Under the pieces are notes generated by a model. It ran no database searches, was not told the DNA's origin, and was given only the letters and a program-made list of their open reading frames with translations. DNA of 64,000 nt, from IMG/VR virus record IMGVR_UViG_3300047548_001236, positions 1 to 64,000 of that record. One strand, 5' to 3'. Below, piece after piece: positions 7,219 to 41,800 of this stretch. The stretch's first letter is position 1. Each line of letters opens with the position of its first letter. The position numbers were made by a program, and so were the translations under genes.

Positions 7219-8047
7219 CTTTCGTTACCGCCGATTGACGCTCTAGGTCAGTGAAGCCCATGGAAGCATATGTTGCAGATGTTTCCATTCCCGATGCATA
7301 AGCCGACTTCATACGAGTCGTCATAGCCGAAGCTGCACGGATCGTGTTTGCTGTTCCGTGTGTATCATACTGCATTGTGTTGTTGACGTTGAACCCAAGC
7401 GCGGAGCCAGCGTGGAACGCATTGATGTTAGCTCCGAGGAATATGAAGCCCCAGTTCTTGGCTTCCGCCTTTTCGACCATCGTTTTGATGTCATCATTAC
7501 GGAAAGTGCGAGATGAATTCTCTTCTCCGTCCGTGAGAACGGTGACGATCACCGATTCACGATCCGCTTTCTTAACCTTTGAAAGTTGCTCGTTGATTTT
7601 CATCATCACACCGCCCATTGCATCAAGCAGATTGGTGCCACCGCGAGGATTGTAGCTGTTGTGATCGAGCGGATTCACGTCTTTGACATTGACATGGTCA
7701 ATCGTGCATTTGACGGATGAACCATCAAACTTATATAGCGAGACAAACGTTTCGATTCCACTCTTTTCAGCGTCGACTTTTTGACCATCGAGGAATTCGT
7801 TGAATCCGGAAATGGTGTTGTCTCGGCAGCTCTGCATTGAGCTCGAGTCATCAAGAACAAAGATGATGTGGGAGGTTTTCTTGCCAGCCTTCTTGGGCTT
7901 GAACGCTTCCCCGAGAGTCGGCTTCGCTTGAACCGTCTGAGGAGCTTGTTGCACAACTGTGTGCGGGAGAATCGTAGTAGTTATATGAGGAGTTTGTACA
8001 ATTGACGGGTTGATCAAATTGTGGTAGGGGTAGTTTATATATGTCAT
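7208..8047 (-). CDS. von Willebrand factor A (MIDAS) domain protein
   Basis: FVLDDSSSM, GGTNLLDA, LTDGEENSS. Confidence 0.88.
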   Translation of the reverse strand: MTYINYPYHNLINPSIVQTPHITTTILPHTVVQQAPQTVQAKPTLGEAFKPKKAGKKTSHIIFVLDDSSSMQSCRDNTISGFNEFLDGQKVDAEKSGIETFVSLYKFDGSSVKCTIDHVNVKDVNPLDHNSYNPRGGTNLLDAMGGVMMKINEQLSKVKKADRESVIVTVLTDGEENSSRTFRNDDIKTMVEKAEAKNWGFIFLGANINAFHAGSALGFNVNNTMQYDTHGTANTIRAASAMTTRMKSAYASGMETSATYASMGFTDLERQSAVTKDDQ

Positions 8048-8244: not shown

Positions 8245-9036
8245 ATGTCTATTTATACACCTTATACCTATCTTATAGGATGGTCTTCAATAAGTAAATA
8301 TTATTATGGCGTCCGTTTTGCGAAAAACTGCCACCCAAGTGATTTGTGGGTGAAGTACTTCACCTCTTCCAAAACCGTAGCTGAATACCGTAAACTTTAC
8401 GGTGAGCCTGACGTGATTGAGGTTCGAAAAACATTCACAGATAAACACTCGGCAATTTTGTGGGAGGAGAGAGTGCTCCGAAAACTAGATATCAAGCACA
8501 ACGAAAAGATGCTTAATGCGAACGTTGCAGGCGCAATCGTGAAGAATCTTGATCACGCAAAAGGAAGACCGAGTAAACTCAGAGGCAGATATTGGACGGA
8601 GGAACAGAAAGCGAAGCTCAGAAAACCAAAATCAGTCCCTAGTCCGTTAAAGGGAAAACAATTGACAGATGAACATAAAGAGAAGCTCCGTGCTGCTAAA
8701 CGCGACTATAAACCGTGGAACGCTGGCAAAACTGGCCTACAGAGTCATTCGAGCGAAACAAAAGAAAAAATGCGGATGGCTAAGATCAAGTCAAAAGTCA
8801 TTATATTTTCAGAATGCCCTTGCTGTAAGGAAATAAAAGTTAAGCCAAATCAAACTTTCTGTAGCAATTCGTGTAGAGCGAAACACAACGCACAAAAATT
8901 ATCAGCTCAGGGAAAATTTGGATTTCAGAACAAGTCTAACCAAGATGCTGCGCAGTTAGCTAGAAGGCCCGTTGGGTTATACGGTGGAGCCCATACCGCA
9001 GACTCAATCAAGCAGCTAGGCGAACCTGTGGCTTGA
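8245..9036 (+). CDS. Homing endonuclease, GIY-YIG-like with NUMOD3 repeats
   Basis: YTYLIGW...YYYGVR, HSSETKEKMR repeats; late promoter TATAAATA at 8174-8181; antisense to its neighbours. Confidence 0.8.
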   Translation: MSIYTPYTYLIGWSSISKYYYGVRFAKNCHPSDLWVKYFTSSKTVAEYRKLYGEPDVIEVRKTFTDKHSAILWEERVLRKLDIKHNEKMLNANVAGAIVKNLDHAKGRPSKLRGRYWTEEQKAKLRKPKSVPSPLKGKQLTDEHKEKLRAAKRDYKPWNAGKTGLQSHSSETKEKMRMAKIKSKVIIFSECPCCKEIKVKPNQTFCSNSCRAKHNAQKLSAQGKFGFQNKSNQDAAQLARRPVGLYGGAHTADSIKQLGEPVA

Positions 9037-9336
9037 AATTATCGTTTGCAATGTTTGTTGCAGTTATTATTGTCTTCGCGGTAACGGCGCTTAGATCCCG
9101 GTAGCTCCATCCTGCCTAGTCCGCCTGTCGATCCTATTTCGAGCCCATCAAAGATACACTTGCTGATATCCTGTTAGATTTCAACTTGACCCACTACAGA
9201 TCAAAGTATCTAACACCGCTTCCGTTATCAGTCCGGTAGGTAGTTAACCTGTTTCCTTTGGCAAGTGTATCTATGGTGGACCCGCTGGGTACCGCCCCCA
9301 GGTCCAGAACGTGTTCAGTGAATATCATCACTACAA
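8962..9336 (-). ncRNA. ssrA: Circularly permuted (two-piece) tmRNA
   Basis: Acceptor piece ends GGGGGCGGTACCCAGCGGGTCCACCA (9274); intervening segment 9147-9273; coding piece starts GGGCTCGAAATAGGATCGAC (9146); tag ANDNFKPQVRLAA* (9008-9049); G3.U70 pair. Confidence 0.93.
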
Positions 9337-9339
9337 TTG

Positions 9340-9370
9340 TATTTATACTAGATCATGCTGAACAAGTCAA
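9340..9370 (-). promoter_or_regulatory. Overlapping sigma70-type (TTGACT-17-TATAAA) and T4 late (TATAAATA) promoter for tmRNA
   Basis: TTGACTTGTTCAGCATGATCTAGTATAAATA. Confidence 0.75.
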
Positions 9371-9500
9371 CCGCGATCGTATCTTCTTTGCTTTTCTTCG
9401 TAGGTGTCGTATCTTTCGGTCTCGCTTCCCATCAACTCCTCCTATGAAAAGAGGGGCTAACCATTGGCCCCTCACGAGTCTATTACGCGACCAGACGTAT

Positions 9501-14265: not shown

Positions 14266-14357
14266 TCAGGAACGCGTTTGCCACCATGGCGATCAGTCGA
14301 AGTTACTCGATTGACAGGAGTCGAACCTGCTATTTCGTGTTTGCTGAAACGTTCCTT
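14266..14357 (-). ncRNA. CAGCAA-stem cassette 1: permuted tRNA-elbow mimic (T arm, loop-closed acceptor, D arm)
   Basis: AGGAACG/CGTTCCT closing stem, TTCAGCAAA, GCAGGTTCGACTCCTGT. Confidence 0.7.
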
Positions 14358-18569: not shown

Positions 18570-18674
18570 TGGTATCCCAGACAGGATTCGAACCTGCACC
18601 TACGTCGACTGATAACCAGCGGTAGGCCCTAGCTTTTTATGGCCCCGGTGTTTACCCACTTCCACCACTAGGAT
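18570..18674 (-). tRNA. Degenerate Leu-like tRNA with enlarged variable arm
   Basis: Acceptor, D and T arms and CCA intact; anticodon stem poorly paired. Confidence 0.5.
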
Positions 18675-18680
18675 ATTTTT

Positions 18681-18757
18681 TGGAGGTCGACCATGGACTT
18701 GAACCACGACCCCAGCTCTTGCAAGAGCTGTACATTAACCAATTTTGCTAATCGACC
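18681..18757 (-). tRNA. tRNA-Cys-like with 8-nt anticodon loop
   Basis: CAGCT-CTTGCAAG-AGCTG; U73; CCA. Confidence 0.7.
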
Positions 18758-21237: not shown

Positions 21238-21313
21238 TGGCGGCCCTGGTGGGACTCGAACCCACGACCATGAGTTTTAGAGGCTCTAGCTCTACCATCT
21301 GAGCTACAAGGCC
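21238..21313 (-). tRNA. Amber suppressor tRNA (anticodon CUA)
   Basis: Loop CT-CTA-AA, canonical D/T arms, G73, CCA; two mismatches in anticodon stem. Confidence 0.8.
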
Positions 21314-21694
21314 GTATGCTGGTTTTGAGGAGGATCCAGCAACCTCACTAATAGCAGAATCGCACGCATTGATTCCGAGTCGCCAGACATTGCGATGTGG
21401 CCATTGTAGTTATTACCTACAAATCATGGGCGATGAACACCCGCCATATATTCTGGTCGAACAAGACCTAAAAGCGAGCCTCTAGGCTGGTTGGGCTTTG
21501 ACATAATTTCACCACGTTTGAAAGCAGGGTGGCTTGTGGCTACTTTAGTGTCATACCAACCAAACGCTGATTTTATCATTCTTGGTTGCAGTATCCACCC
21601 AAATTCTTCGACCTTTCACCGGTTAAGGTCGACTGTTGCTTTCACGGGCTCCCCTGAGCGGACAGGGTAAAGCAAGCAATCAGATTCTTAAAAA

Positions 21695-21842: not shown

Positions 21843-22020
21843 CAGGATCATTTTACGTGCTCTACTAACTGAGCTACTCTCCCATCAAAGATACACCGTT
21901 TTTACAGATTTCCCTCTTTCGAGTAACGCACCTCTGTCGATGTATCTGTGGTGGGAGAGGGTGGATTTGCACCACCGACCACGGCTTTATCGGAGCAAAA
22001 AGATTGCTGAATTGATCCTT
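21843..22020 (-). tRNA. Circularly permuted tRNA-Ile(GAU) in CAGCAA cassette 3
   Basis: 3' half 21949-21996 transcribed before 5' half 21856-21883; rejoins to 76 nt with CGGCT/AGCCG stem and loop CCGATAA. Confidence 0.85.
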
Positions 22021-22031
22021 TTGAAATTATT

Positions 22032-22157
22032 TCAGGTTCGCCTTTTACGTTGACCTAACTACTTAGTCGATCACCCCGTAGTGAAGTTGGCGGGGTGAGC
22101 AGGACTTGCACCTGCATCTACGGCTTGACATGCATAATTGTATGCTGAACCGAACCT
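22032..22157 (-). tRNA. Circularly permuted tRNA-Asp(GUC) in cassette 4
   Basis: 3' half 22088-22133, 5' half 22048-22077; stem ACGGC/GCCGT, loop ATGTCAA, G73. Confidence 0.85.
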
Positions 22158-22568: not shown

Positions 22569-23030
22569 CTATTTATTGCAAAGCTCACGAGGCAGCAGGT
22601 CGAATTCAGGAAGATAATCGTTGAAATAACGACGGTAGCTTCCGACGACTGACTTGATCTTACCCTTGACCTTGCGACGCTCTTCAACGTTGCGAATACT
22701 GTTCATCAGGTTGCCGAGCAGATGACGAACCGAAGCAATGTGAGCCTGTTTGTACAGCCTCTCTGCTTCAACCTTGGAGTAACCACGTTCGACAACATAA
22801 TTGACGAAGCAACGATTACCACGTTCTTCATTGCACTTCCGGCACATCACGAACATGTTGTCCGTAGTATCTGGACCACCGTACGACTTTGCTACCATGT
22901 GGTCAACAGTCGCCATGTTGCGTTGCACTTTATCAGGATTTGCTTTCCAGACCAACTGAACGTTGCAGCAAGGGCAACGACGAAGTCCGCTTTCGAAAGC
23001 ATTCTGCAGGGCTGTTTTCTTGAAGCACAT
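22569..23030 (-). CDS. HNH endonuclease
   Basis: CPCC...ATVDHMVAKSYGG...NMFVMCRKCNEERG. Confidence 0.85.
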   Translation of the reverse strand: MCFKKTALQNAFESGLRRCPCCNVQLVWKANPDKVQRNMATVDHMVAKSYGGPDTTDNMFVMCRKCNEERGNRCFVNYVVERGYSKVEAERLYKQAHIASVRHLLGNLMNSIRNVEERRKVKGKIKSVVGSYRRYFNDYLPEFDLLPRELCNK

Positions 23031-23399: not shown

Positions 23400-24355
23400 T
23401 CTACTTGCAACGGGGAGTACGAGGGGATTTGCACCAGGCCCCTGAACCTTCTCCTCTTTTCAGCTCCTCAGGGAAGGAGCCTACTTCTGCACCTTGCTTA
23501 CTCCGCTCTGGAAGTAGAATATTGTTGCGGGTGAGATTACCCCGTATTGTGAGCGCCTTTCCGATGTACCACATCCCTTGCGAGGAGTGTTGTCGGGTTA
23601 TCCACAAGAGTCTTTCGATCATCTTGTATCGCTCAGTGCTGCCGTTTTTGAGGTCTGGCTGTTGACCTGTCGCATGTTACTACTCGTCCGTCTTTCCTAC
23701 GCCTGCCTTGCGAGCAGCTCAGAGGCGCTAACCTCCTACGTGATCATTCTGAACAACTACTCTAGCCTTGCGAGCCTTCGTAGGCCTGATTATCTTTCGA
23801 CTCAGGCATTAAGCACCTTTCGTAACACACCGGAGCAGACTTTCGCTTTTTGAATCTATGTTGCTTTGAACCAAAATCAAACGCTAATTTAATAGCTGCG
23901 AACCTACTGAGAAGTGCTGCTCCAGTTGCTCCACACCTTGTTAGATGCAGAATACCACACTCCTCCTGTCTTTCTCCTTGCGGGATACTCAACGTCACTT
24001 CACGAATCCGGTGTGACCCTTCCTCGTTGATGATCCTACACCGCCCTTCTACGCGAATAGTCGGACTATGTAGACACCTGTTGGACTTTTCCATTCGTTA
24101 GTTTGGCTGAAAACTGTTTGGGCGCCAACCCTCTTACACCTCACCGATCGGCTCTGGTGCTATCCTTTCGGACAGTCTTCCTAACTTACTGGATACCTCC
24201 TAGCTTCTAAGGCTAGAAGGGACTTGCTTTCGGTTTAATCCGAGTCAAGTCTATCCCAGGCTTGTATGAATGGACCATTTTACTGGCGCAGGTATGTAGG
24301 AATCCCTGCTTTGGGTGTGTTACCACACTTACCCTGACGACGTCATACCGCCATT
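23400..24355 (-). ncRNA. Candidate large structured ncRNA (about 950 nt)
   Basis: No credible ORF, many hairpins, downstream of a promoter and boxA within the tRNA island. Confidence 0.45.
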
Positions 24356-24644: not shown

Positions 24645-24768
24645 ACGGGAACATCTGATTTTTGCCGGCTGCTCTACCACTGAGCTACAAGATCCTTGTG
24701 GGGACCTTGGAGGGATTCGAACCCACGACCCGCTGGTTGGTATATCAATATTTGCTGTATTGTTCCCT
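24645..24768 (-). ncRNA. CAGCAA cassette 5: permuted tRNA-like RNA with G-1:C73-type acceptor
   Basis: T arm, CAAGGTCCCCA-CAA-GGATCTTG, then D arm; GGGAACA/TGTTCCC closing stem. Confidence 0.75.
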
Positions 24769-25404: not shown

Positions 25405-25674
25405 TTAGCTGATATGCTTGGACGAGTCAACAACTTTTTTCAGATATTCATAAACTTCATCATAATCGTCAAACATCCTCGTTCCATGCTTGCTCATCAC
25501 TCGGACTTTTGACCCGAAACACTGAACCAGACCAAAACCTGGATATCTTCCGTTACCGAGACGTCTAGCATTCCAGCGTGTTCTTCTCGGCACTGGTTCT
25601 ACAAAAGCATAATCGACGTTGAGGATTTCTCCGCAGGTTTCGTAGAACTTCTTCTTTTCTTCGTTTGTTTTCAT
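25405..25674 (-). CDS. Hypothetical protein
   Basis: ORF overlapping upstream stop (ATGA). Confidence 0.6.
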   Translation of the reverse strand: MKTNEEKKKFYETCGEILNVDYAFVEPVPRRTRWNARRLGNGRYPGFGLVQCFGSKVRVMSKHGTRMFDDYDEVYEYLKKVVDSSKHIS

Positions 25675-26072
25675 GGATTGTAAGGGATTGCCAGCCTTTC
25701 GTCTAACATCAGTTGGTTGATATTCACACCATCGACGTACAGCACAGCAAGATAACGTCCATACTTGTCGGGCTCATCCTTGATCGATTCAATCACGATC
25801 GTACGACCCTGAGAGATTTTAGCGCGAAGCCAATCTCGAACAGCAAGACCTCTTTCCCTTGTGGCTCCTCTAACTTCTGGAGCGTCAAGACCATACAACC
25901 TAAGACTCTTGTCTTTGATCCAGATGGAAAATCCGAGGTCGATGTCTACTGTTAGCGTGTCGCCGTCGTATACGGAAACAACCTCTACCTCGTAGATATA
26001 GTTTCGAGTGGCTTGTTGTGCATGAGCAGATGTTGCAAACAACAACGCACATATGGAAAGTATTTTGATCAT
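25671..26072 (-). CDS. Thermonuclease (SNase-like) with signal peptide
   Basis: VYDGDT, LRLYGLDAPE, DKYGRYLA. Confidence 0.9.
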   Translation of the reverse strand: MIKILSICALLFATSAHAQQATRNYIYEVEVVSVYDGDTLTVDIDLGFSIWIKDKSLRLYGLDAPEVRGATRERGLAVRDWLRAKISQGRTIVIESIKDEPDKYGRYLAVLYVDGVNINQLMLDERLAIPYNP

Positions 26073-26740
26073 GTGAAGTCTACACCAAACGCGATACTGA
26101 TTCTTGTAAAGTTAGTTTTCTTGGTTGGACTAACCATGTGAGGCATCCAGCAAGGAAACAATACGAGGGTGCCTTCCTTTGGCGTGATACAGATTGGGTT
26201 ACCAAAAAATGGATACCGCTGAACGTTATCTTTCATGATAACTGGAGTTTTTGCGAAGTGGATAGGATCAAGAAACACAAGATCGCCAGGATCTGGACGG
26301 CTTGCAGACTTGATCAACACCTCTTCATCTAAGGGAACGTCCACATCTAGGTTGTCTTTATCAATGCCGCTGGTTGGAAAATACACGCCAGCAAGCATGT
26401 CTTTAGCATTATGAGAGTGGGGCATGTGATATGCGTATCCGTCATTGTTAATGTTACCCCAGTACGTTCTAGAGTTGGGAGTTCCGCTAATTCCAAAGAA
26501 CGATTGTGAGCTGAGAACAATATTGTCAATGATCTGCTTCAAAGACTTAAAGCTGTCATACCGATCTTGAAGTCCCGCGACTGTTTGATCGATATCGACA
26601 CCTGAACGCATTTGTAAAGGGTCGATGTTCGCAACGTGCAGTAGATCGTGGATCAGTTGTTTGTTCAGTTCTTTAGATTTCTCTCCAAGCGACATGTATG
26701 CGATTGGATTGGGAAAAGCTGACATTGTCTGTAGTTTCAT
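26069..26740 (-). CDS. Putative 2OG-Fe(II) oxygenase
   Basis: WGNIN...HMPHSH, GVYF, LVLFPCWMPHMV, RISIAF. Confidence 0.85.
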   Translation of the reverse strand: MKLQTMSAFPNPIAYMSLGEKSKELNKQLIHDLLHVANIDPLQMRSGVDIDQTVAGLQDRYDSFKSLKQIIDNIVLSSQSFFGISGTPNSRTYWGNINNDGYAYHMPHSHNAKDMLAGVYFPTSGIDKDNLDVDVPLDEEVLIKSASRPDPGDLVFLDPIHFAKTPVIMKDNVQRYPFFGNPICITPKEGTLVLFPCWMPHMVSPTKKTNFTRISIAFGVDFT

Positions 26741-26843: not shown

Positions 26844-27947
26844 TCAAGCGGCCATATCTACTTCATAAAGGAATCTTGTGTTCGGCATCAGCTTGCGATT
26901 GTAGGAAGTCGATTGAACGAACACGTCATACGGAAGACCATTAGGACTAACGTTGCCACGCATACCATAAGGAATTCCGATCATTTCTCGGGCGCGAGCA
27001 CCAGTGTACATATCACCAGTCAGCTTGTCTCGCAGCACGACTTCTTTGTTTGGTTGGATTTCTTCACGCTTGGTGAATTCGTAGAACCCACGACCAGTTT
27101 GGAAGATCAGGTTATGATCCTGCACAAACTCTTTAATGACGCGAGGAGCTGAACCGACATCCATCACCTGGAATCTGCCTGGATCGACCGGCTTGAGATC
27201 AGCCGACATATTCTGGTCGATCTTAACATAACGTCCCTTTGCATCGCGAGGACGGTTGGTGAGAACACCAAACGACTTGTCCAAAGTACGGTTCATGCGA
27301 CCGCTATTAGCTACAACTTCTTCATACTCACGAACGCGCTCTTCGGATACCTGACGATATACGATAGCGTTCACGAGGCTCAAGATGTCAGTGAACTGAT
27401 CCAAATACAGATGGTATCCATTACCGATACGAGCCAACTCTGAGTAGTAAGGAGGAGCTTCTGGCCTGGACAAGCATTGAATGGTATAAATCTGGATTCC
27501 CATGTCAGCCAACTTGCGAGCTTCTTGTCTCCAGTCGATACGATCTCTGTTGTCGCGATAGTTTGGCGTGTGAGCAATCTCATCGCCAATCATTACAAGA
27601 ATTTTACGAGCGTTCAATGACCAGTTGAAAGCAGTCTGTGCTTGACGAAGCACTAGTTCATAGGCTTCACCGCCGTTACCGCCACCACCAGTTGGATTGA
27701 CATTTCGCACGAATTGTGTAAGAGTGTAGAGATCCGTAGTCAGATCGACTTGCTTGGTAATGTACCCATAGCGATGGAGATCGCAGTAGTCGCCGTTTGC
27801 ACCAAGGCCGATTCTGAGATTGGGGATTTCTTTAAAAAGAGAACCTACAGTGTTCTCCAGGTTTCGCCTGACTTGGTCTAGGCAGGGGTACATCGACCCG
27901 GTAGTGTCAAAATTGAAAACGATTTCGAGCTTATCTTGCGTATTCAT
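26844..27947 (-). CDS. vWA domain protein
   Basis: FNFDTTGSM, GDYCD, GGG..EAYE, LVMIGD. Confidence 0.88.
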   Translation of the reverse strand: MNTQDKLEIVFNFDTTGSMYPCLDQVRRNLENTVGSLFKEIPNLRIGLGANGDYCDLHRYGYITKQVDLTTDLYTLTQFVRNVNPTGGGGNGGEAYELVLRQAQTAFNWSLNARKILVMIGDEIAHTPNYRDNRDRIDWRQEARKLADMGIQIYTIQCLSRPEAPPYYSELARIGNGYHLYLDQFTDILSLVNAIVYRQVSEERVREYEEVVANSGRMNRTLDKSFGVLTNRPRDAKGRYVKIDQNMSADLKPVDPGRFQVMDVGSAPRVIKEFVQDHNLIFQTGRGFYEFTKREEIQPNKEVVLRDKLTGDMYTGARAREMIGIPYGMRGNVSPNGLPYDVFVQSTSYNRKLMPNTRFLYEVDMAA

Positions 27948-28078
27948 GTGTATTCTCCGTATGTTTTGTATATGTGCGTATATTTTTGTATGAACAATGT
28001 GTAGGCACGATGTAGTAATGCGTTCACAACACTATTTATACACGGTTACGCATACGATACAGCACCTACGAAGAAAAA

Positions 28079-28177
28079 TATCCTGGTTGGACTCGAACCA
28101 ACGGCCTGCGCTTTATTCCCAGCGTTTGGGTCCTTCACCATGAGGGAGCACTGCTCTACCGACTGAGCTACAGGATG
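28079..28177 (-). ncRNA. tRNA-like RNA with 34-nt anticodon loop, no CCA
   Basis: Canonical D and T arms; two hairpins in the anticodon loop. Confidence 0.6.
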
Positions 28178-28190
28178 TTTCGGAATTCGT

Positions 28191-28248
28191 TGGTACCCCC
28201 GGCCGGACTCGAACCGGCAAGCCCGAAGGCGCTTCATTTTGAGTGAAA
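28191..28248 (-). pseudogene. 3' remnant of tRNA-Leu(CAA)
   Basis: TTTCA-CTCAAAA-TGAAG, variable arm, T arm, CCA; 5' half absent. Confidence 0.8.
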
Positions 28249-29236: not shown

Positions 29237-29321
29237 TCAGGATCAATGTTTGTGGAATCGAACCACTTCGACAAGTTTTTCAAGACTCGTTTTATCCGAA
29301 GATGTTGCGGAACTGATCCTT
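29237..29321 (-). ncRNA. CCGCAA cassette 7 carrying anticodon-like arm and T arm
   Basis: AGGATCA/TGATCCT; CGAGTCTTGAAAAACTTG; GTGGTTCGATTCCAC. Confidence 0.7.
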
Positions 29322-29713
29322 TATTTGTCTTTACATACTATCAAACAGTTCCTCATGGAAGTCAATAATTAATTTGCCCAGCCGCTTCCTGGGCGATGTA
29401 CCTACTTTGACCTTACGTCCTAGACCGGTACCCGGTGCTCGCGCGGACCCAAGCCACTAGTGCTCTCCATATTTATAGACCCATGGGCTGATGATGGGTC
29501 TTTCTTACATAGGTTGAGTCTGATATGCATTTTAAGATCCCCGCTTATACTCTGCTCGGATCACGTTTGAAGTTAGACTTCAACTCGTCTTAGACGGACC
29601 ATCCCGTTGCTTTCAGAGGTTAAACCACCTATGTGAGTCATGTCCCGGGTCCCCGTACGGTGAACCTATTACCCCCTCGAGGCAAGCCTCACTACAGGAC
29701 GGGCATTTCATAC

Positions 29714-29830
29714 TTACGAGCTGGCTTTCTTATCGTTGTAAGCCTTGAGCTTCGCAAGAAACTCTTCTTCTGTTAGCGAGTGCCAACCAACACATTTGCC
29801 AGTCGGCGATCGTCCACATCCACAGTCCAT
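29714..29830 (-). CDS. 38-aa CDGSH-like Fe-S/Zn mini-protein
   Basis: MDCGCGRSPTGKCVGWHSLTEEEF...; AAGGA SD; below the ORF-track size cutoff. Confidence 0.7.
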   Translation of the reverse strand: MDCGCGRSPTGKCVGWHSLTEEEFLAKLKAYNDKKASS

Positions 29831-29852
29831 TTTCATTATCCTTTGTTTTGTT

Positions 29853-29981
29853 TCTGGATCATCTTTGATGCGTCGTTGCGTTTACCATTCCGCCACACGA
29901 ACATTGGCTCGTGGTAGGACTCGAACCTACAATTGCTTGTGCAATACGATTTTACAATGCAGAGTTGCTGTACTGATCCAT
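29853..29981 (-). ncRNA. CAGCAA cassette 8: permuted class-II tRNA-like RNA (Tyr-GUA or Leu-like)
   Basis: TTGTAAA loop, variable arm, T arm, CCA in loop, then D arm GGCGGAATGGTAAACGC. Confidence 0.72.
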
Positions 29982-29989
29982 TAATTGAA

Positions 29990-30433
29990 TTATACCTCTT
30001 CAAAAGCCTTTAGTTTCCACTGGAGAGTTTCGTGGATATCAATTTGACCTTCAAGGAAGTTAAGCACACCACGTTCATTCAATTCTTCCGCCATTTTTGC
30101 AGCCGTACGCAGCTCATCAAGAACTACTTCGTTATCAGATGCAAGACGAATAAACATGAACTTAGCGCTTGGGATAGCAATCTCGTCGGAGATTGCGCTT
30201 AGCTCCGAGAATCTTTTCAACGATCCTGGGGTGAATGCTCCCATTGCACGGATATGCTCAGCGTAGAGATCTACAGAGTTCCACGTGTCTGTATATACTG
30301 TTCCGAAGAACGTGTGATACTGGTCAAAGTTTGGACCTGTAACGTTCCAGTGATAGTTATGTGCTTTCAGGTAGAAAGCAAATACAGATGCGAGAACTTT
30401 CTTCATCTGTTCTATGAGTTGTTGTTTGTCCAT
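29990..30433 (-). CDS. dps: Dps/ferritin-like DNA protection protein
   Basis: KAHNYHWNVTGPNF..YH..F; D..AEHIR. Confidence 0.92.
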   Translation of the reverse strand: MDKQQLIEQMKKVLASVFAFYLKAHNYHWNVTGPNFDQYHTFFGTVYTDTWNSVDLYAEHIRAMGAFTPGSLKRFSELSAISDEIAIPSAKFMFIRLASDNEVVLDELRTAAKMAEELNERGVLNFLEGQIDIHETLQWKLKAFEEV

Positions 30434-30450
30434 GTTAGGGCCCTCTCGAA

Positions 30451-30819
30451 TTACGGATATCTGTTGATTGAAGGATAGTTGCCAGTCTTAGCAAGATGGA
30501 ATCCGCGGTCGACAGCACCTTGTAGCGTGTCATGTGGCTCTTTTCCAAGAGCACCATATGCACCAGTACGTAGGTAATACTTTCCATCACCCTCCTGTCT
30601 GATTACAACAACTTCATCCCCATCCTTTTCAACCTCATGAACAACGTGAGGATCTTCTCTGTGAATCTTAGAAACGTAAACAGAGTATCCTTTGGAACGA
30701 AGATCACGTACTTCTGGATGTTGGTTCAGTGGAGGAATATCATCATTGTATCCGACATCCGCCTCCGACAAGTTAGCACGAATAGCCTGCTCGACAAGCA
30801 GCTTGATATTGGTCATTGT
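30451..30819 (-). CDS. Late hypothetical protein, possible internal protein
   Basis: TATAAATA upstream; LVE/LSE motifs near N-terminus. Confidence 0.55.
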   Translation of the reverse strand, partial: TMTNIKLLVEQAIRANLSEADVGYNDDIPPLNQHPEVRDLRSKGYSVYVSKIHREDPHVVHEVEKDGDEVVVIRQEGDGKYYLRTGAYGALGKEPHDTLQGAVDRGFHLAKTGNYPSINRYP

Positions 30820-30859
30820 GTTCCCCTTGTAGTATACTGACACAACAGTATTTATACTA

Positions 30860-31075
30860 CTAGGCTAGTTCACCTTTTTCAGCGACGCAAGCACCATCAA
30901 TAGACGTGACCGTGTACATTGATGACAGAATGACAAACAAATCCTGGCTCATTTGATTCACTCGAATGTTACAGTTTTCGATGGTGTTGTAAGGTCCCCA
31001 TTCATCTTCAACCACAGCACATCGTTCGGATGTAGGGGTCACCATCAAGCATACAAGAACCATTGCCTTAAACAT
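30860..31075 (-). CDS. Small Cys-containing hypothetical protein
   Basis: MFKAMVLVC...D.WGPY...C. Confidence 0.6.
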   Translation of the reverse strand: MFKAMVLVCLMVTPTSERCAVVEDEWGPYNTIENCNIRVNQMSQDLFVILSSMYTVTSIDGACVAEKGELA

Positions 31076-31331
31076 AGACACATCTCCTTTTGAATACAAC
31101 TCTAAGCAAGAGCACGTTTGTACTCAGGGCGTGCAGATGCTATGCCTTGATATTTATTTCAGAACAGCCGCAGTCCTCGATGATCATCATACTGCCACAA
31201 CCACATGTTGCACGTTCCCTGGCTCGTCCACGATCCACCGCCAGGTCTCTAAGCTGCTCTAGGATAATCACCTGCCGGCTTCTACCCTAGCCTCACGGTT
31301 TGTTCTAGAATTTATCCACTTTGGCTTATTT

Positions 31332-31425
31332 TGGTGCCCATGACAGGATTCGAACCTGCATGCCCCTTTTACAAGGCGGCGCCATCTCAGGGCGCTGTGG
31401 CTACCAGAAGTTACACCACATGGGC
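31332..31425 (-). tRNA. tRNA-Leu(GAG), second copy
   Basis: Loop CTGAGAT, long variable arm. Confidence 0.82.
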
Positions 31426-31520
31426 AGAATATTGGTCGGTCTCTCCCTGATGTCACACCTTTGCAGAGCGGTCTCTACAACCGTAAAGGATGCTTCGATG
31501 TTTACAGAGCCTTTGGATAA

Positions 31521-31626
31521 TGGTGGTCTCAGCAGGATTCGAACCTGCACCGCGCCGGAAGCACATTCCGGTGTTCACCCGAGGTTTCACTCTGCAGCGC
31601 TACTACCCTCAACGAACTCCGAGACC
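31521..31626 (-). ncRNA. tRNA-like RNA with acceptor, T arm and CCA but aberrant body
   Basis: GGTCTCG/TGAGACC-A-CCA; GCAGGTTCGAATCCTGC. Confidence 0.6.
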
Positions 31627-31631
31627 ATAAT

Positions 31632-31712
31632 TGGTGCTGATGGAGGGACTCGAACCCTCAAAAACTCACTTTCTGAAAATGAGATGTCTACCTGAAATTG
31701 CATCACATCAGC
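31632..31712 (-). tRNA. tRNA-Leu(CAG), short variable region
   Basis: Loop TTCAGAA. Confidence 0.8.
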
Positions 31713-31717
31713 GTTAT

Positions 31718-31793
31718 TGGATGCCCCGCTTGGACTCGAACCAAGGTTTTCGCGCTCAGAACGCGACGTCCTACCGGCATAGACGACGGGGCA
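31718..31793 (-). tRNA. tRNA-Gln(CUG)
   Basis: Loop TTCTGAG; U1-A72. Confidence 0.88.
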
Positions 31794-31797
31794 AAGA

Positions 31798-32523
31798 TTA
31801 TATGGTGCGGCCGAAGTTCCACCCGTCAGGGAGAGTGTCTCCTTTAGCCATTTTCCTATTGTTGTGACCGTCTGTTATCCAAACAGAGTTCTCTGTTTTT
31901 CCACGCACCCAACCTTCTGGTATATCGGAATCGTTAGTTAGACGTTTATTCGTTTTACCGTCGGTTATCCACATAAACGGTTGTCTCTTTCCTTTATTCC
32001 GCTCTTTAGAGCGGTAATTTGAATCTTTCCATTTCTGAGAAATACTTTCTGATATTTTCTGTTTATGTTCTTCGGTTTTTGCCACACCTTTGTGGAGTTT
32101 GCTATTGTGTTCAGCTATACGCTTTTTGTGATCAACCGTCAACTTGCGCCCAACACCGTGCTTATTCCCTTTCATGGCGCGTGAAATAAGTTTTTTTGTT
32201 GATTCGTTATGTGTTCTACCCTCGAACGTCAACCCATTGATCTGTTTACCGCCCAGACCACCCCCAACGCAAATGTTATATGTATCAGAACGCGCGACAA
32301 AATCTTCGTTAACTATTTCTCGTTCTTTTTGAATTGCAGCGTCAAGAGTATCGAAGCGGTACATTACTTCCTTAGAAAAGGTGTCTCTACCATACTTTAC
32401 AATAGCCCTTTTTAATAGTTTTCCGGAACCCATATATCCGTCATCAACATCGTCGGTTTTATGAAGTCCAATGTATATTTTACCATTAGCCAAATTAGTA
32501 ACTTTGTAAATGGTGTAATCCAT
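31798..32523 (-). CDS. Seg-like GIY-YIG homing endonuclease with NUMOD3
   Basis: TIYKVTNLANGKIYIG, YMGSG, HNESTKKLIS. Confidence 0.9.
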   Translation of the reverse strand: MDYTIYKVTNLANGKIYIGLHKTDDVDDGYMGSGKLLKRAIVKYGRDTFSKEVMYRFDTLDAAIQKEREIVNEDFVARSDTYNICVGGGLGGKQINGLTFEGRTHNESTKKLISRAMKGNKHGVGRKLTVDHKKRIAEHNSKLHKGVAKTEEHKQKISESISQKWKDSNYRSKERNKGKRQPFMWITDGKTNKRLTNDSDIPEGWVRGKTENSVWITDGHNNRKMAKGDTLPDGWNFGRTI

Positions 32524-32556
32524 GTGCTAATACCTCCAGCACATATTTATGATTTT

Positions 32557-32584
32557 GGAGATTTTACCATTAAACTACCTCCCA
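32557..32584 (-). pseudogene. 5' remnant of a tRNA (Gln-like)
   Basis: TGGGAGGTAGTTTAATGGTAAAATCTCC, truncated by the HEG promoter. Confidence 0.6.
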
Positions 32585-32779
32585 TCGCTCTTCTTTGAAC
32601 TGCACCGGCTGCATTCGGATCCTTGGCCGAGGCGTTCTGGCATGCAGCAGCGTACCCGTCGATGCAGTCCAAAGAAGAGTCGGTTATTACTGGTTTCCTC
32701 ACCGAAAGGTCTTTAATACACCAGTCCTATTGTCAGTCATTAAAAAGATCGTACGTCAGACTGACAATTGAGTACGATC

Positions 32780-33154
32780 TCATCCCACCGTGTCGATATG
32801 AGTCAACCGAGACGGTTCAATTTTTCCGTGATGAATATATCCATGTCCGTCTGTTCCAGGTGCAAACTTGCTCGACCAATCACTCATATCATCTGTTTCA
32901 TGATCTTTATGAAGTGGTAGGTTACTCGAATCAACTTTCCATATATCCATGGACTTGCCATCATCTGCATGGAGATTAGCAAACCACTTGGCATTATTTA
33001 AGTCTTTCCACACATACACCTTTCCAGATCTAGTGTCAAGACCTTTTTGCTTGATGGTATTATGTCTGTCAGCCAGCGACACGTGGTAGCTTGTATCGAT
33101 ACTGTGAGTCGTTTGCTCGTGTAGCTTGGTAATAAATTGGATGAAACTATCCAT
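32780..33154 (-). CDS. Putative internal protein, ADP-ribosyltransferase-like fold
   Basis: MDSFIQFI..LHE start; YHVS...IKQKGL...VYV. Confidence 0.55.
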   Translation of the reverse strand: MDSFIQFITKLHEQTTHSIDTSYHVSLADRHNTIKQKGLDTRSGKVYVWKDLNNAKWFANLHADDGKSMDIWKVDSSNLPLHKDHETDDMSDWSSKFAPGTDGHGYIHHGKIEPSRLTHIDTVG

Positions 33155-33184
33155 CACTTTCTCCGATTGTTTGATATCGGATAT

Positions 33185-33472
33185 TTATTGTTGTGATTGT
33201 TTCAGAAGAGCTTCTCTACGTCTCGCGACCTTGAGGTTACGGATCAACGTTTTTACTTCTGTTGGAGCTTTGAGATTGCATTCCATGCAAGCAGAGAGCG
33301 CTTTTACTCTAACCTCACGATCGGAAATGGTAGACACAACATCCACATAATGAAAGTAGTCGCTAACGTGTCTCATAACCTTGGATTGTAGTGCCGGATC
33401 ATTGCTTACGATCCTTTGCAGCAACAAAGCAGCTTCCGACTTTCCAAACAGATAATCCATTTCACACTCCAT
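33185..33472 (-). CDS. Hypothetical protein
   Basis: ORF. Confidence 0.5.
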   Translation of the reverse strand: MECEMDYLFGKSEAALLLQRIVSNDPALQSKVMRHVSDYFHYVDVVSTISDREVRVKALSACMECNLKAPTEVKTLIRNLKVARRREALLKQSQQ

Positions 33473-34010
33473 GCTAATTCGAATGACTGGCCCCACCTAT
33501 CTCGCCGTCAAACCGATCCTACCATTTTACCCTGGATTTACCCAGTCAAAAATAGGACCCTCCGTGATTCCGTTGGGAGGAGCAACCCTCCCGGAGTAAC
33601 AATCGAAGTGATGAGCTTCTACAAATTCGGTGTGTTACCAACCTAGCCATTTCCCAGTATAGCCTACTGCCCAACGCCTTCACGATCGGTTGGCAATCGA
33701 ATCCTGATAACCCGCAGATTCCTAGGGTATTGCAAGGGATGTTCATCACACATCCACAGGCCATATTCTTTATGCCGCTTCGAGTTTCCATTGAATTTGC
33801 AGTAACACTTCTTGCAGCCTATGATACTCGACCCGAGCATCAAGCCGTTCTGCAGCAGTGTAATCGGGATTTCTCGTTTCTTCGTGCTTGATAGACATTT
33901 GACGAGAGATCTCAACCCACTGCTTGATTAAACTATCGCGGTCCACGTCGAACTCCTAATCTTGTAAGCAGGACATACGTCCTTTTCGATTCGCAGTCAA
34001 CGTGTTTTTG

Positions 34011-34070
34011 CGGGATCATCTTGCTTTTCAACCAAAATGAAAGTTTGTATTTGTTGCGGAACTGATCCCT
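34011..34070 (-). ncRNA. CCGCAA cassette 9 displaying only an anticodon stem-loop
   Basis: GGGATCA/TGATCCC; TTTCA-TTTTGGT-TGAAA. Confidence 0.7.
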
Positions 34071-34074
34071 TTAT

Positions 34075-34149
34075 TGGTGCAGCTTAGAGGATTCGAACCT
34101 CTGACATCTGTCGAGTCAGGACAGCACTCTACCACTGAGTTAAAGCTGC
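34075..34149 (-). tRNA. tRNA-Val(GAC)
   Basis: Loop CTGACTC. Confidence 0.88.
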
Positions 34150-35632: not shown

Positions 35633-35770
35633 TCTGGATCAACTTTTTGCTGTATACTGTGCTGCTATTACACTAATCCGCCATAGTTAGATTTGGTGGC
35701 GGACCTAGGATTTGCACCTAGACTAGTCGTTTATGATACGAAAAGCTAATTTGTTGCTGGAATGATCCAT
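35633..35770 (-). tRNA. Circularly permuted tRNA-Met(CAU) in cassette 10
   Basis: 3' half 35694-35740, 5' half 35656-35682; stem GT|CGT/ACGAC, loop ATCATAA. Confidence 0.85.
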
Positions 35771-37409: not shown

Positions 37410-37485
37410 TGGCTGGGGATCCAGGATTCGAACCTGGAACCTGCGGTACCAAAAACCGTTGCTCTGCCAATTGAGCTAATCCCCA
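37410..37485 (-). tRNA. tRNA-Gln(UUG)
   Basis: Loop TTTTGGT; U1-A72. Confidence 0.9.
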
Positions 37486-38298: not shown

Positions 38299-38429
38299 CT
38301 GGATCAACTTTTTGCTACGCGTTCTATCTACTAAACTAACCCCTGTCAGTAATATGGTCAGGGGTGTAGGATTTGCACCTACGTCTCGATCTCCCAAAGA
38401 TATGCTAATTAGTTGCTGTAATGATCCAT
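38299..38429 (-). tRNA. Circularly permuted tRNA-Pro(UGG) in cassette 11
   Basis: 3' half 38355-38401, 5' half 38318-38345; stem CG|ATC/GATCG, loop TTTGGGA, C1-G72, A73. Confidence 0.87.
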
Positions 38430-40752: not shown

Positions 40753-40842
40753 TGGCGGAAGCGGTGGGATTCGAACCCACGGAACGATTTCTCGTTCGCT
40801 AGTTTTCAAGACTAGAATCTTAAACCACTCGATCACGCTTCC
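40753..40842 (-). tRNA. tRNA-Ser(UGA)
   Basis: Class II. Confidence 0.92.
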
Positions 40843-41674: not shown

Positions 41675-41800
41675 TGGCGACCCCGGTAGGACTCGAACCT
41701 ACAACCTACTGATTAGATCGTGCCTTAGAAGATTCGCACTTCACTGGGCTTCCATACCCTCAGGCCAAGTCAGTTGCTCTATCCATTGAGCTACGGAGTC
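41675..41800 (-). tRNA. tRNA-Arg(UCU) interrupted by a 50-nt insert in the anticodon
   Basis: Removing 41717-41766 restores a 76-nt cloverleaf with loop CTTCTAA. Confidence 0.85.

Follow-up and report, generated by a model that had tools for sequence, protein, structure and literature searches.

Small RNAs that accompany a Ro60-family protein have been described in bacteria and in a number of phages. Y RNA genes adjoin the Ro60 gene on the same strand, and their products combine a terminal stem, a conserved motif and a module resembling transfer RNA (tRNA) (PMC4201824). In 2014, Chen et al. reported such YrlA-like RNAs beside the Ro60 genes of 254 bacteria and 22 phages, and defined them by the motif GNCGAAN0-1G together with the tRNA-like domain (PMC4201824). 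In Thermus phage phiLo, Ro60 binds the adjacent Y-like RNAs Yrl1 and Yrl2 (PMC12135203); in coliphage Bas63, the Ro60-like gp130 counters the "ppl" defence system, and the authors of that study proposed, singling out no individual gene, that Y RNAs are to be found among the adjoining tRNA genes (PMC11482910). A further class that invites comparison, the Class I RNAs of Dictyostelium, measures 42-65 nucleotides (nt): a short terminal stem whose first G is invariant is followed by the motif CCUUACAGCAA and then by a body that varies, and the 3' end reads C-UGU (PMC7919456). The present analysis concerns two short cassettes (34012-34069 and 29239-29320) in positions 1 to 64,000 of the IMG/VR virus record IMGVR_UViG_3300047548_001236, the whole of this stretch being called the window. 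In both, tRNA parts are enclosed by a constant terminal structure, here termed the handle, and the family of handle RNAs is tightly linked to the gene for a protein with the predicted fold of Ro60; because of this linkage, the cassettes most likely encode RNAs that partner a Ro60 homologue of the phage in the manner of Y RNAs and display the tRNA parts as a module.

Two cassettes with a shared handle

The window covers the opening 64 kb of a 282,855-bp record, complete according to CheckV, and it is dominated by a minus-strand array with 38 tRNAs called by ARAGORN. Both cassettes are read on the minus strand, as is the whole array. They are listed here with the two array tRNAs that bear on their inner arms.

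34012-34069, minus strand: minimal handle RNA of 58 nt, with a 7-bp terminal stem, the motif GTTCCGCAA at 34054-34062 and an inner arm at 34026-34042
29239-29320, minus strand: mid-size handle RNA of 82 nt including an outer A-U pair, with the stem GGATCA/TGATCC and the motif GTTCCGCAA at 29305-29313
37410-37485, minus strand: tRNA-Gln(UUG), with the anticodon loop TTTTGGT, the same as in cassette 34012-34069
40753-40842, minus strand: tRNA-Ser(UGA), with the anticodon arm CTAGT-CTTGAAA-ACTAG, the closest model for the arm of cassette 29239-29320

The two cassettes open with the identical 16 letters GGATCAGTTCCGCAAC and close with TGATCC, the complement of the first six. At up to three mismatches, this 16-mer occurs six times in the window, always on the minus strand, against 0.61 occurrences expected by chance.

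In the shorter cassette, which begins 5 nt past the CCA of tRNA-Val(GAC), GGGATCA (34063-34069) pairs with TGATCCC (34012-34018), and the sole inner structure is the hairpin TTTCA-TTTTGGT-TGAAA. Its loop (34031-34037) is identical to that of tRNA-Gln(UUG), just as the original prediction had it, and an A-rich 3' strand precedes the tail C-GC. A sequence-only model built from 59 relatives, the cassette itself among them, gives it 45.1 bits (E 8e-13). That prediction had staked its reading on the loop being conserved in related phages, and the full hairpin does recur in Sinorhizobium phage phiM7 (L490:1706-1762) and in several IMG/VR contigs, the same loop being found in the relatives at L325, L398, L286, L031 and L110. 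In addition, the wastewater runs X3 and X4 contain a relative of this freshwater phage, about 93-97% identical over window positions 33994-34080, in which the cassette is present with 2-6 letters changed, so that a circulating relative has conserved the element.

The longer cassette retains more of a cloverleaf: a D-loop remnant CTTCGGATAA at 29292-29301, an anticodon-like arm ACGAGT-CTTGAAAA-ACTTGT at 29271-29290 and a T arm GTGG-TTCGATT-CCAC at 29252-29266, with the handle in the place of the acceptor. A T arm without an acceptor had been foreseen. The Ser(UGA)-like arm had been read as a 7-nt loop, CTTGAAA, and here only the letters stand: an extra A makes the best-paired loop, CTTGAAAA, 8 nt long and closed by 6 bp, whereas the orthologue L297:5879-5959 does carry a 7-nt CTTGAAA loop. 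Compared with the arm of tRNA-Ser(UGA), the loop letters are common to both and 8 of 10 stem letters agree. Among the orthologues (L297:5879-5959, L110:3557-3641, L372:7564-7644 and others), 10 of 16 consensus pairs show a compensatory change, and in reduced forms of this kind a conserved stretch Y-U-N-G-G-A-U-A-A replaces the D loop. Orthologous cassettes keep the letters of their loops, and their arm stems change in a compensatory manner.

Neither cassette has an acceptor stem or a 3' CCA, and neither is called by ARAGORN, by the Rfam tRNA model even at E up to 10, or by any Rfam family. The earlier statement that neither can be charged is borne out: they are uncharged, acceptor-less look-alikes of anticodon arms, a description that holds across the family. 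What the original prediction missed is the conserved handle and its linkage to the gene for a Ro60-like protein.

Pattern scans of IMG/VR returned between 177 members at 109 viral loci (strict scan) and 321 distinct members at 121 loci (relaxed scan). With cultured phages included, the unpaired motif is common to family members from phages that infect Proteobacteria, Firmicutes and Actinobacteria. A BLAST search of the short elements against GenBank phages, an insensitive approach, gave a 28-nt match to Sinorhizobium phages alone, and this match later proved real. The handle is a 7-bp stem formed by the 5' and 3' ends, with single-stranded N-U-N-C-N-G-C-A-A directly 3' of the 5' strand. In the consensus of 166 members, an optional outer pair is followed by G-G-A-U-C-A, pairing with U-G-A-U-C-C at the 3' end. 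Within the motif, the U, the C and the terminal C-A are invariant, the G is kept in 165 of 166 members and the last A in 162 of 166, and the fifth position is A or C. An A-rich run lies ahead of the 3' stem strand, and a short YG tail comes after it, with the consensus U-G-U-U (flank counts of 114 for U, 149 for G and 107 for the next U, out of 166).

Is this stem a helix in RNA, or a repeat in DNA? The stems of this genome read GGATCA, GGAACA, GGTTCG, GGAACG and GGGTGG, all compensated, and the relaxed set contains more than 40 different closing 6-mers, each with its complement. Stem letters that differ between copies and nevertheless pair denote an RNA helix rather than transposon-type inverted repeats. 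The detection of members relied on stem complementarity and A-richness, which biases the statistics of the inner stem; the outermost pair, unused in detection, is A-U in 49, G-C in 8 and U-A in 2 of 59 sequences, with no mismatch, and no shuffle or slid register matched this result.

Between the two strands of the handle, three cargo designs are found: an anticodon arm alone, an acceptor-less cloverleaf, and a permuted tRNA half. Lengths fall into two clean classes, of 40-69 nt and 100-139 nt. Half of the minimal members (43 of 86) contain a hairpin of 5 bp with a 7-nt loop, against 5.7 +/- 2.2 in shuffles, and 17 of the 86 have the canonical loop YU-NNN-R-N, against 0.3. The commonest loops in the relaxed set are CTTTTAA, CTTGTAA, TTTTGGT, CTTCTAA, CTGTAAA, CTGTTAA and CTTGAAA; by assignment, there are 13 loops of Lys (UUU; CUUUUAA), nine of Thr (UGU; CUUGUAA), five of Gln (UUG; UUUUGGU), four of Arg (UCU; CUUCUAA), and three each of Tyr (GUA; CUGUAAA) and Asn (GUU; CUGUUAA). 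In the cloverleaf design the handle replaces the acceptor, and the forms range from a full set of D, anticodon and T arms down to the reduced cassette 29239-29320. The permuted design has the order T arm, acceptor hairpin, D arm, the acceptor being sometimes provided with an encoded ACCA and sometimes GNRA-capped. The start of many members lies a few nt downstream of a tRNA CCA, which suggests that these RNAs are freed from a polycistronic precursor by the tRNA-processing enzymes.

A Ro60-like protein gene beside the handle RNAs

When the open reading frames (ORFs) at member loci were clustered, the top neighbour was a protein of about 474 amino acids (aa) with matches to Pfam DUF2828 and DUF7788, present at 37 loci. 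The handle RNA nearest to a full-length gene of this kind lies at a median distance of 28 nt, at 100 nt or less in 21 of 33 loci, and on the same strand in all 33, mostly upstream. Searches of whole records found the protein in 19 of 42 member records and in 5 of 5 further ones, those without it being almost all small fragments. Among member records at least 40% complete, 14 of 16 encode it, as opposed to 0 of 18 controls (chance-hit records of 58-435 kb; Fisher p = 8.6e-8). No RRM-type protein was seen among the conserved neighbours of handle loci. In this genome the Ro-like gene is present in one copy (486 aa, 71132-72592, minus strand), outside the window.

An AlphaFold model of the protein, built on a 32-sequence alignment, has a predicted local distance difference test (pLDDT) of 81 and a predicted template modelling (pTM) score of 0.76. 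Searched with Foldseek against the PDB, its top 13 matches are all Ro60/Rsr proteins (frog, human, Deinococcus, Thermus phage phiLo), in full-length alignments with E from 2e-9 to 5e-7 and a query TM of 0.50-0.59 for 12 of the 13, D. radiodurans Rsr (2nvo) being at 0.35. The Swiss-Prot Ro60 models of mouse, human, Deinococcus, worm and frog are matched too, and the predicted fold contains both the HEAT-repeat ring and the C-terminal vWA domain of Ro60. Proteins of this DUF2828 type are encoded in at least 711 GenBank phage records (tblastn), some of them annotated as "Ro-like RNA binding protein"; the carriers include phages in wide laboratory use, namely FelixO1-like coliphages, Listeria A511 and many mycobacteriophages. 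DUF2828/DUF7788 proteins occur in eukaryotes as well, and their Atlas clusters are viral and plant. A vWA-like ORF inside the array (26844-27947) was considered as a second Ro-like protein and proved unrelated (hhalign probability 0.2%).

Two tandem tRNA-shaped genes stand about 325 nt upstream of the Ro-like gene, at 73160-72917 on the minus strand (loci L484/L486), outside the window. They have the normal order (acceptor, D arm, T arm, encoded ACCA), and a handle with a 6-nt closing loop replaces the anticodon arm; they could be processed like tRNAs, even with a CCA end.

The same arrangement of RNAs and Ro-like gene is present, unannotated, in four cultured phages. One of them is a Felixounavirus:

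7716-7780, 7883-7935, 8271-8337 and 8359-8482, plus strand: four handle RNAs of E. coli phage dune (L487, MN850636.1)

These occupy gaps between annotated tRNAs where the tRNA array begins, immediately behind dune_109, the Ro-like gene annotated as "vWFA protein". Their stems include GACCAA, GACCGT and GGCCGT, all compensated, and the long RNA also has a Thr(GGU)-like anticodon arm. In Mycobacterium phage Moostard, three RNAs, one long and two minimal, directly follow gp54 ("Ro-like RNA binding protein"), and one of the minimal RNAs carries a canonical CUGCUAA arm. Listeria phage A511 has three RNAs immediately before gp57, and Sinorhizobium phage phiM7 several in the tRNA region upstream of gp171.

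How close are these RNAs to those already described? As in Y RNAs, an end-to-end stem adjoins a conserved, mostly unpaired motif, and the RNAs, frequently more than one at a locus, are encoded next to a Ro60-family gene and in its orientation. The comparison with YrlA (RF02553) is closest for the long members. Scans in which the stem letters may vary find at least ten members in the window; besides the two cassettes, they include the following.

38301-38427, minus strand: long handle RNA in which the handle closes a permuted tRNA-like domain
35636-35768, minus strand: long handle RNA with a permuted tRNA-like domain and an encoded ACCA
29856-29979, minus strand: long handle RNA, its tRNA-like domain permuted; Rfam YrlA matches weakly and in part at 29878-29932
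24648-24766, minus strand: long handle RNA with the compensated stem GGAACA/TGTTCC and an orthologue at L031:2234
22035-22156, minus strand: long handle RNA with the stem GGTTCG/CGAACC and a motif ending in GCAT, in tandem with 21845-22018
21845-22018, minus strand: long handle RNA whose acceptor strands are separated by a large insert; ACCA is encoded
21527-21600, minus strand: probable member of 74 nt, with the stem GGGTGG/CCACCC, the motif ATACTGCAA and the tail TG; weaker than the others, being seen by the relaxed scan only
14269-14355, minus strand: mid-size member of 87 nt, with the stem GGAACG/CGTTCC, the motif TTTCAGCAA, a T arm and two small hairpins

The long members have the exact inner topology of YrlA (T arm, closed acceptor hairpin, D arm). 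At 38301-38427, for instance, the order is hairpin, T arm (loop TGCAAAT), 3' strand of the acceptor with ACCA, loop, 5' strand of the acceptor, D arm. The best YrlA-like match of the genome, at 24648-24766, reaches 35.8 bits over model positions 24-84, which is the tRNA-like domain only, and relatives reach at most 45.9 bits, both below the gathering score of 69. The long RNA of Moostard gives a full-length YrlA match, also sub-threshold, at 37.9 bits; the phage "YrlA-like" RNAs of 2014 are therefore probably long members of the handle family, in mycobacteriophages.

The differences from YrlA are equally clear. Half of the family has no YrlA-type domain, its members carrying an anticodon arm only or a cloverleaf with the handle as acceptor, and the minimal cassettes lack any such domain. 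The partner protein belongs to the DUF2828/DUF7788 branch, which Pfam TROVE misses, and the RNAs reach at least ten copies per genome, scattered through the tRNA array. Like phiLo and Bas63, the handle phages combine a Ro60-fold protein with small RNA genes immediately adjacent; however, the phiLo RNAs have a CGAA motif and the phiLo protein is a recognisable TROVE protein, and it is in dune, a relative of Bas63, that four handle RNAs occupy that very position. With tRNAs, the cargo shares the canonical T loop, the GG of the D loop and the letters of anticodon loops, and some long members encode ACCA after a 7-bp acceptor helix; on the other hand, the two cassettes have no acceptor end and are missed by tRNA finders, and in the long forms the order of the domains is permuted. 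The handle motif and the forms with an anticodon arm only or an acceptor-less cloverleaf appear to be undescribed, no account of these forms having been found. Like the motif and these forms, the presence of at least ten scattered copies per genome and the breadth over three phyla are outside the descriptions of Chen et al. (2014) and Rfam.

A detail of the long members concerns the T loop, which is UGCAAAU or UGCAAGU instead of UUCGAAU at 38301-38427, 35636-35768, 21845-22018 and 22035-22156, all on the minus strand. In these, the universal pseudouridine-55 position is a G.

Competing explanations

How would a Y-RNA-type partner of this kind work? The RNAs would be transcribed with the tRNA array and processed out of it, as small non-coding RNAs made of a constant handle and a variable module of tRNA parts. 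By analogy with Ro60/Y-RNA particles, the handle is the predicted binding site of the phage Ro60 homologue. The module of cassette 34012-34069 is a bare anticodon arm with the loop of the phage tRNA-Gln(UUG). That of cassette 29239-29320 joins a T arm and a Ser(UGA)-like arm to what remains of a D loop, the handle being where the acceptor would be, and that of the long members has the permuted order of bacterial YrlA, in which the acceptor hairpin stands between T arm and D arm. As the displayed "effector" end, this module may recruit to the Ro-like ring proteins whose recognition target is an anticodon arm or the tRNA elbow; alternatively, it may keep such proteins off the real tRNAs. Candidate targets are host anticodon nucleases, tRNA modification enzymes and repair enzymes. 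The decoy or bait role first proposed for the cassettes would then fit inside the Ro/Y-RNA frame, as one version of the effector function.

Several points weigh against this explanation. The handle motif is U-N-C-A-G-C-A-A (CAGCAA), not the Ro60-contact motif GGUCCGA or GNCGAA, and GNCGAA is in neither cassette. The genome has no canonical Rsr/TROVE gene and no match to Pfam TROVE (PF05731), a model that misses this branch; the protein matches DUF2828 and DUF7788 instead. Same-strand neighbourhood with the Ro-like gene is a property of the family, and the two cassettes themselves lie 37-43 kb from it in this genome. As for the stem, the outermost pair is the only unbiased test of covariation. 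The controls for co-occurrence are few and compositionally different: they are GC-rich phages that lack tRNA arrays, which is not an ideal match. One of the two exceptions among the member records, G034 (the record of L340), is a complete genome of 194,645 bp that keeps only a remnant of the Ro-like gene, a 57-aa frame at 186857-186970 on the plus strand matching the last 37, C-terminal positions of the protein; this is either a decayed gene or a gene interrupted by something that the search did not bridge, and handle RNAs may consequently also work without the protein. Cargo loops coincide with tRNA loops of the same locus in 5 of 41 cases, against 2.2 +/- 1.3 for mismatched loci, a weak signal from partial loci. 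Lastly, four wastewater "RNA-Seq" runs, probably DNA, contain contigs of a relative at about 93-95% identity; these cover ORFs and RNA genes alike, and the runs hence carry no information on transcripts or their ends.

Could the RNAs act alone? As free-standing decoys, they would compete by themselves for PrrC, RloC, VapC, PARIS, retron effectors or modification enzymes, with the handle as a simple clamp. The tRNAs that have the commonest displayed loops are targets of known anticodon nucleases, canonical anticodon loops are enriched in the minimal members, and G034 retains its RNAs beside a mere gene remnant. A clamp, however, needs neither an invariant U..C.GCAA motif nor an A-rich partner strand and a conserved tail; it leaves the same-strand linkage and the co-occurrence with the Ro-like gene unexplained, and many members have no anticodon arm at all, only a T arm, an acceptor and a D arm. 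The displayed loops are themselves ambivalent: those of Lys(UUU), Thr(UGU), Gln(UUG), Arg(UCU), Tyr(GUA) and Asn(GUU) are compatible with the baiting of anticodon nucleases, and equally compatible with the mere copying of the phages' U34-rich tRNA set. All in all, free-standing decoys are unlikely and, given the linkage to the Ro-like gene, a Ro/Y-RNA-type ribonucleoprotein is the better frame.

A second alternative starts from the Dictyostelium Class I RNAs. Apart from tRNA, no Rfam family fits the phage members better than the corresponding model, RF01414, which they match over all 56 positions, and the plan of the model is that of the handle: a 5' G stem, a UUACAGCAA-like motif, an A-rich 3' side and a C-UG(U) tail within 42-65 nt (PMC7919456). 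The motif N-U-W-C-A-G-C-A-A of the handle compares with CCUUACAGCAA of Class I, both directly after the 5' strand; the minimal handle forms measure 43-69 nt; an end-joining stem of 6-7 bp has the invariant first G; and the phage consensus shows the variable middle, the A-rich 3' side and the C-UGU-type end. The family consensus accordingly has every Class I feature of stem, motif, body, size and tail. In the two cassettes the tail is C-GC (34012-34069) and U-GA (29239-29320), so that of the C-UGU end only the G is kept. Might handle RNAs then be regulatory or sponge RNAs of the Class I type, in which the handle is bound by another protein, such as one of the RRM type, or contact with the ribosome or with translation factors is made through the module, the Ro-like gene being an incidental neighbour? 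The RRM protein Rnp1A is the sole partner shown to bind a Class I RNA directly. On the other side, all phage matches, at 19.7-33.1 bits, are under the gathering score of 41.5, with the two cassettes and the other members of this genome unmatched, and the Ro-like gene is the sole consistent linkage, no RRM-type neighbour being conserved. Class I RNAs are, moreover, reported as unique to dictyostelids, with a promoter element of their own (the upstream DUSE), and neither tRNA-like cargo nor a Ro60 link has been reported for them. The explanation is thus improbable to a marked degree, and the resemblance is a strong lead, short of membership.

That the cassettes are non-functional, i.e., decayed tRNA genes, spacers for precursor processing or a mobile DNA element with terminal inverted repeats, would suit their position in tRNA arrays alongside homing-endonuclease genes, the many starts a few nt past a tRNA CCA and the clearly tRNA-derived cargo, but is very hard to reconcile with stem letters that vary between copies of one genome and always pair, with orthologues that keep loop letters and compensate arm stems, and with the same unpaired motif in phages of three bacterial phyla. 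The idea that circularly permuted or split tRNA genes are re-joined into working tRNAs was rejected, as the handle junction is the same whatever the tRNA body, no anticodon loop is restored and some acceptor helices are GNRA-capped.

If the cassettes are indeed Y-RNA-type partners, what follows? Hundreds of phages, laboratory phages among them, carry this largely undescribed RNA family, and one DUF2828-type Ro-like protein is already known to overcome a bacterial defence system (PMC11482910), with RNA partners that had previously not been identified. A terminal stem, U-N-C-A-G-C-A-A, an A-rich strand and a YG tail now form a signature by which candidate partners can be located, and these come in exchangeable versions: an anticodon arm, an acceptor-less cloverleaf, a permuted top half of a tRNA. 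Questions that can now be tested in phage-host pairs are: what is the role of a Ro/Y-RNA particle in infection? Why do Y RNAs mimic tRNA? Are the tRNA arrays of phages in part a counter-defence device? The Class I resemblance, in turn, gives a concrete starting point for work on RNAs whose function has been debated for two decades. One may speculate, and this is a tentative proposal, that phage handle RNAs and Class I RNAs belong to one ancient ribonucleoprotein module, a third Ro/Y-RNA branch built on DUF2828-type Ro60 paralogues, whose phage version is a programmable display of tRNA parts that baits or neutralises host enzymes acting on anticodon arms. Its eukaryotic members would then be the Class I RNAs, which have been orphans since 2004 and regarded as peculiar to social amoebae.

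The tRNA array around the cassettes

Besides tRNAs and handle RNAs, the array contains a GOLLD RNA, a permuted transfer-messenger RNA (tmRNA), small ORFs and homing-endonuclease genes. The GOLLD RNA (23528-23965, minus strand) is full-length (Rfam RF02032, 194.9 bits) and is flanked by handle RNAs and tRNAs. The tmRNA, of the permuted, two-piece type, is at 8962-9374 on the minus strand (Rfam tmRNA_permuted 90.4 bits, alpha_tmRNA 74 bits); its alpha-type match and the Sinorhizobium-phage relatives of one cassette hint at an alphaproteobacterial host.

Among the tRNAs, one has the amber-reading anticodon CUA (21238-21313, minus strand; labelled Pyl by ARAGORN), and a tRNA-like gene at 18681-18757 on the minus strand received a four-letter anticodon call (tgca). 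Four Rfam tRNA matches have no ARAGORN call (41678-41800, 28078-28177, 18573-18674 and 31635-31712, all on the minus strand), and three of them, measuring 100-123 nt, are thus tRNA genes enlarged by sizeable insertions. One of these is the tRNA at 28078-28177; immediately upstream of it, at about 28185-28225 on the minus strand, a T arm is followed by CGGGGGT-ACCA. This element resembles an orphan 3' half of a tRNA, with no obvious 5' half nearby, and it is the cause of a spurious YrlA match at 28153-28220.

Genes of the homing-endonuclease type are interspersed in the array at 31798-32523 (GIY-YIG/NUMOD3 family) and 22569-23030 (HNH family), both on the minus strand, and the GIY-YIG family was found again in 24 member loci. 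The array also includes genes for a ferritin-like protein (29990-30433), a 2OG-Fe(II) oxygenase (26069-26740) and an SNase-like nuclease (25671-26072).

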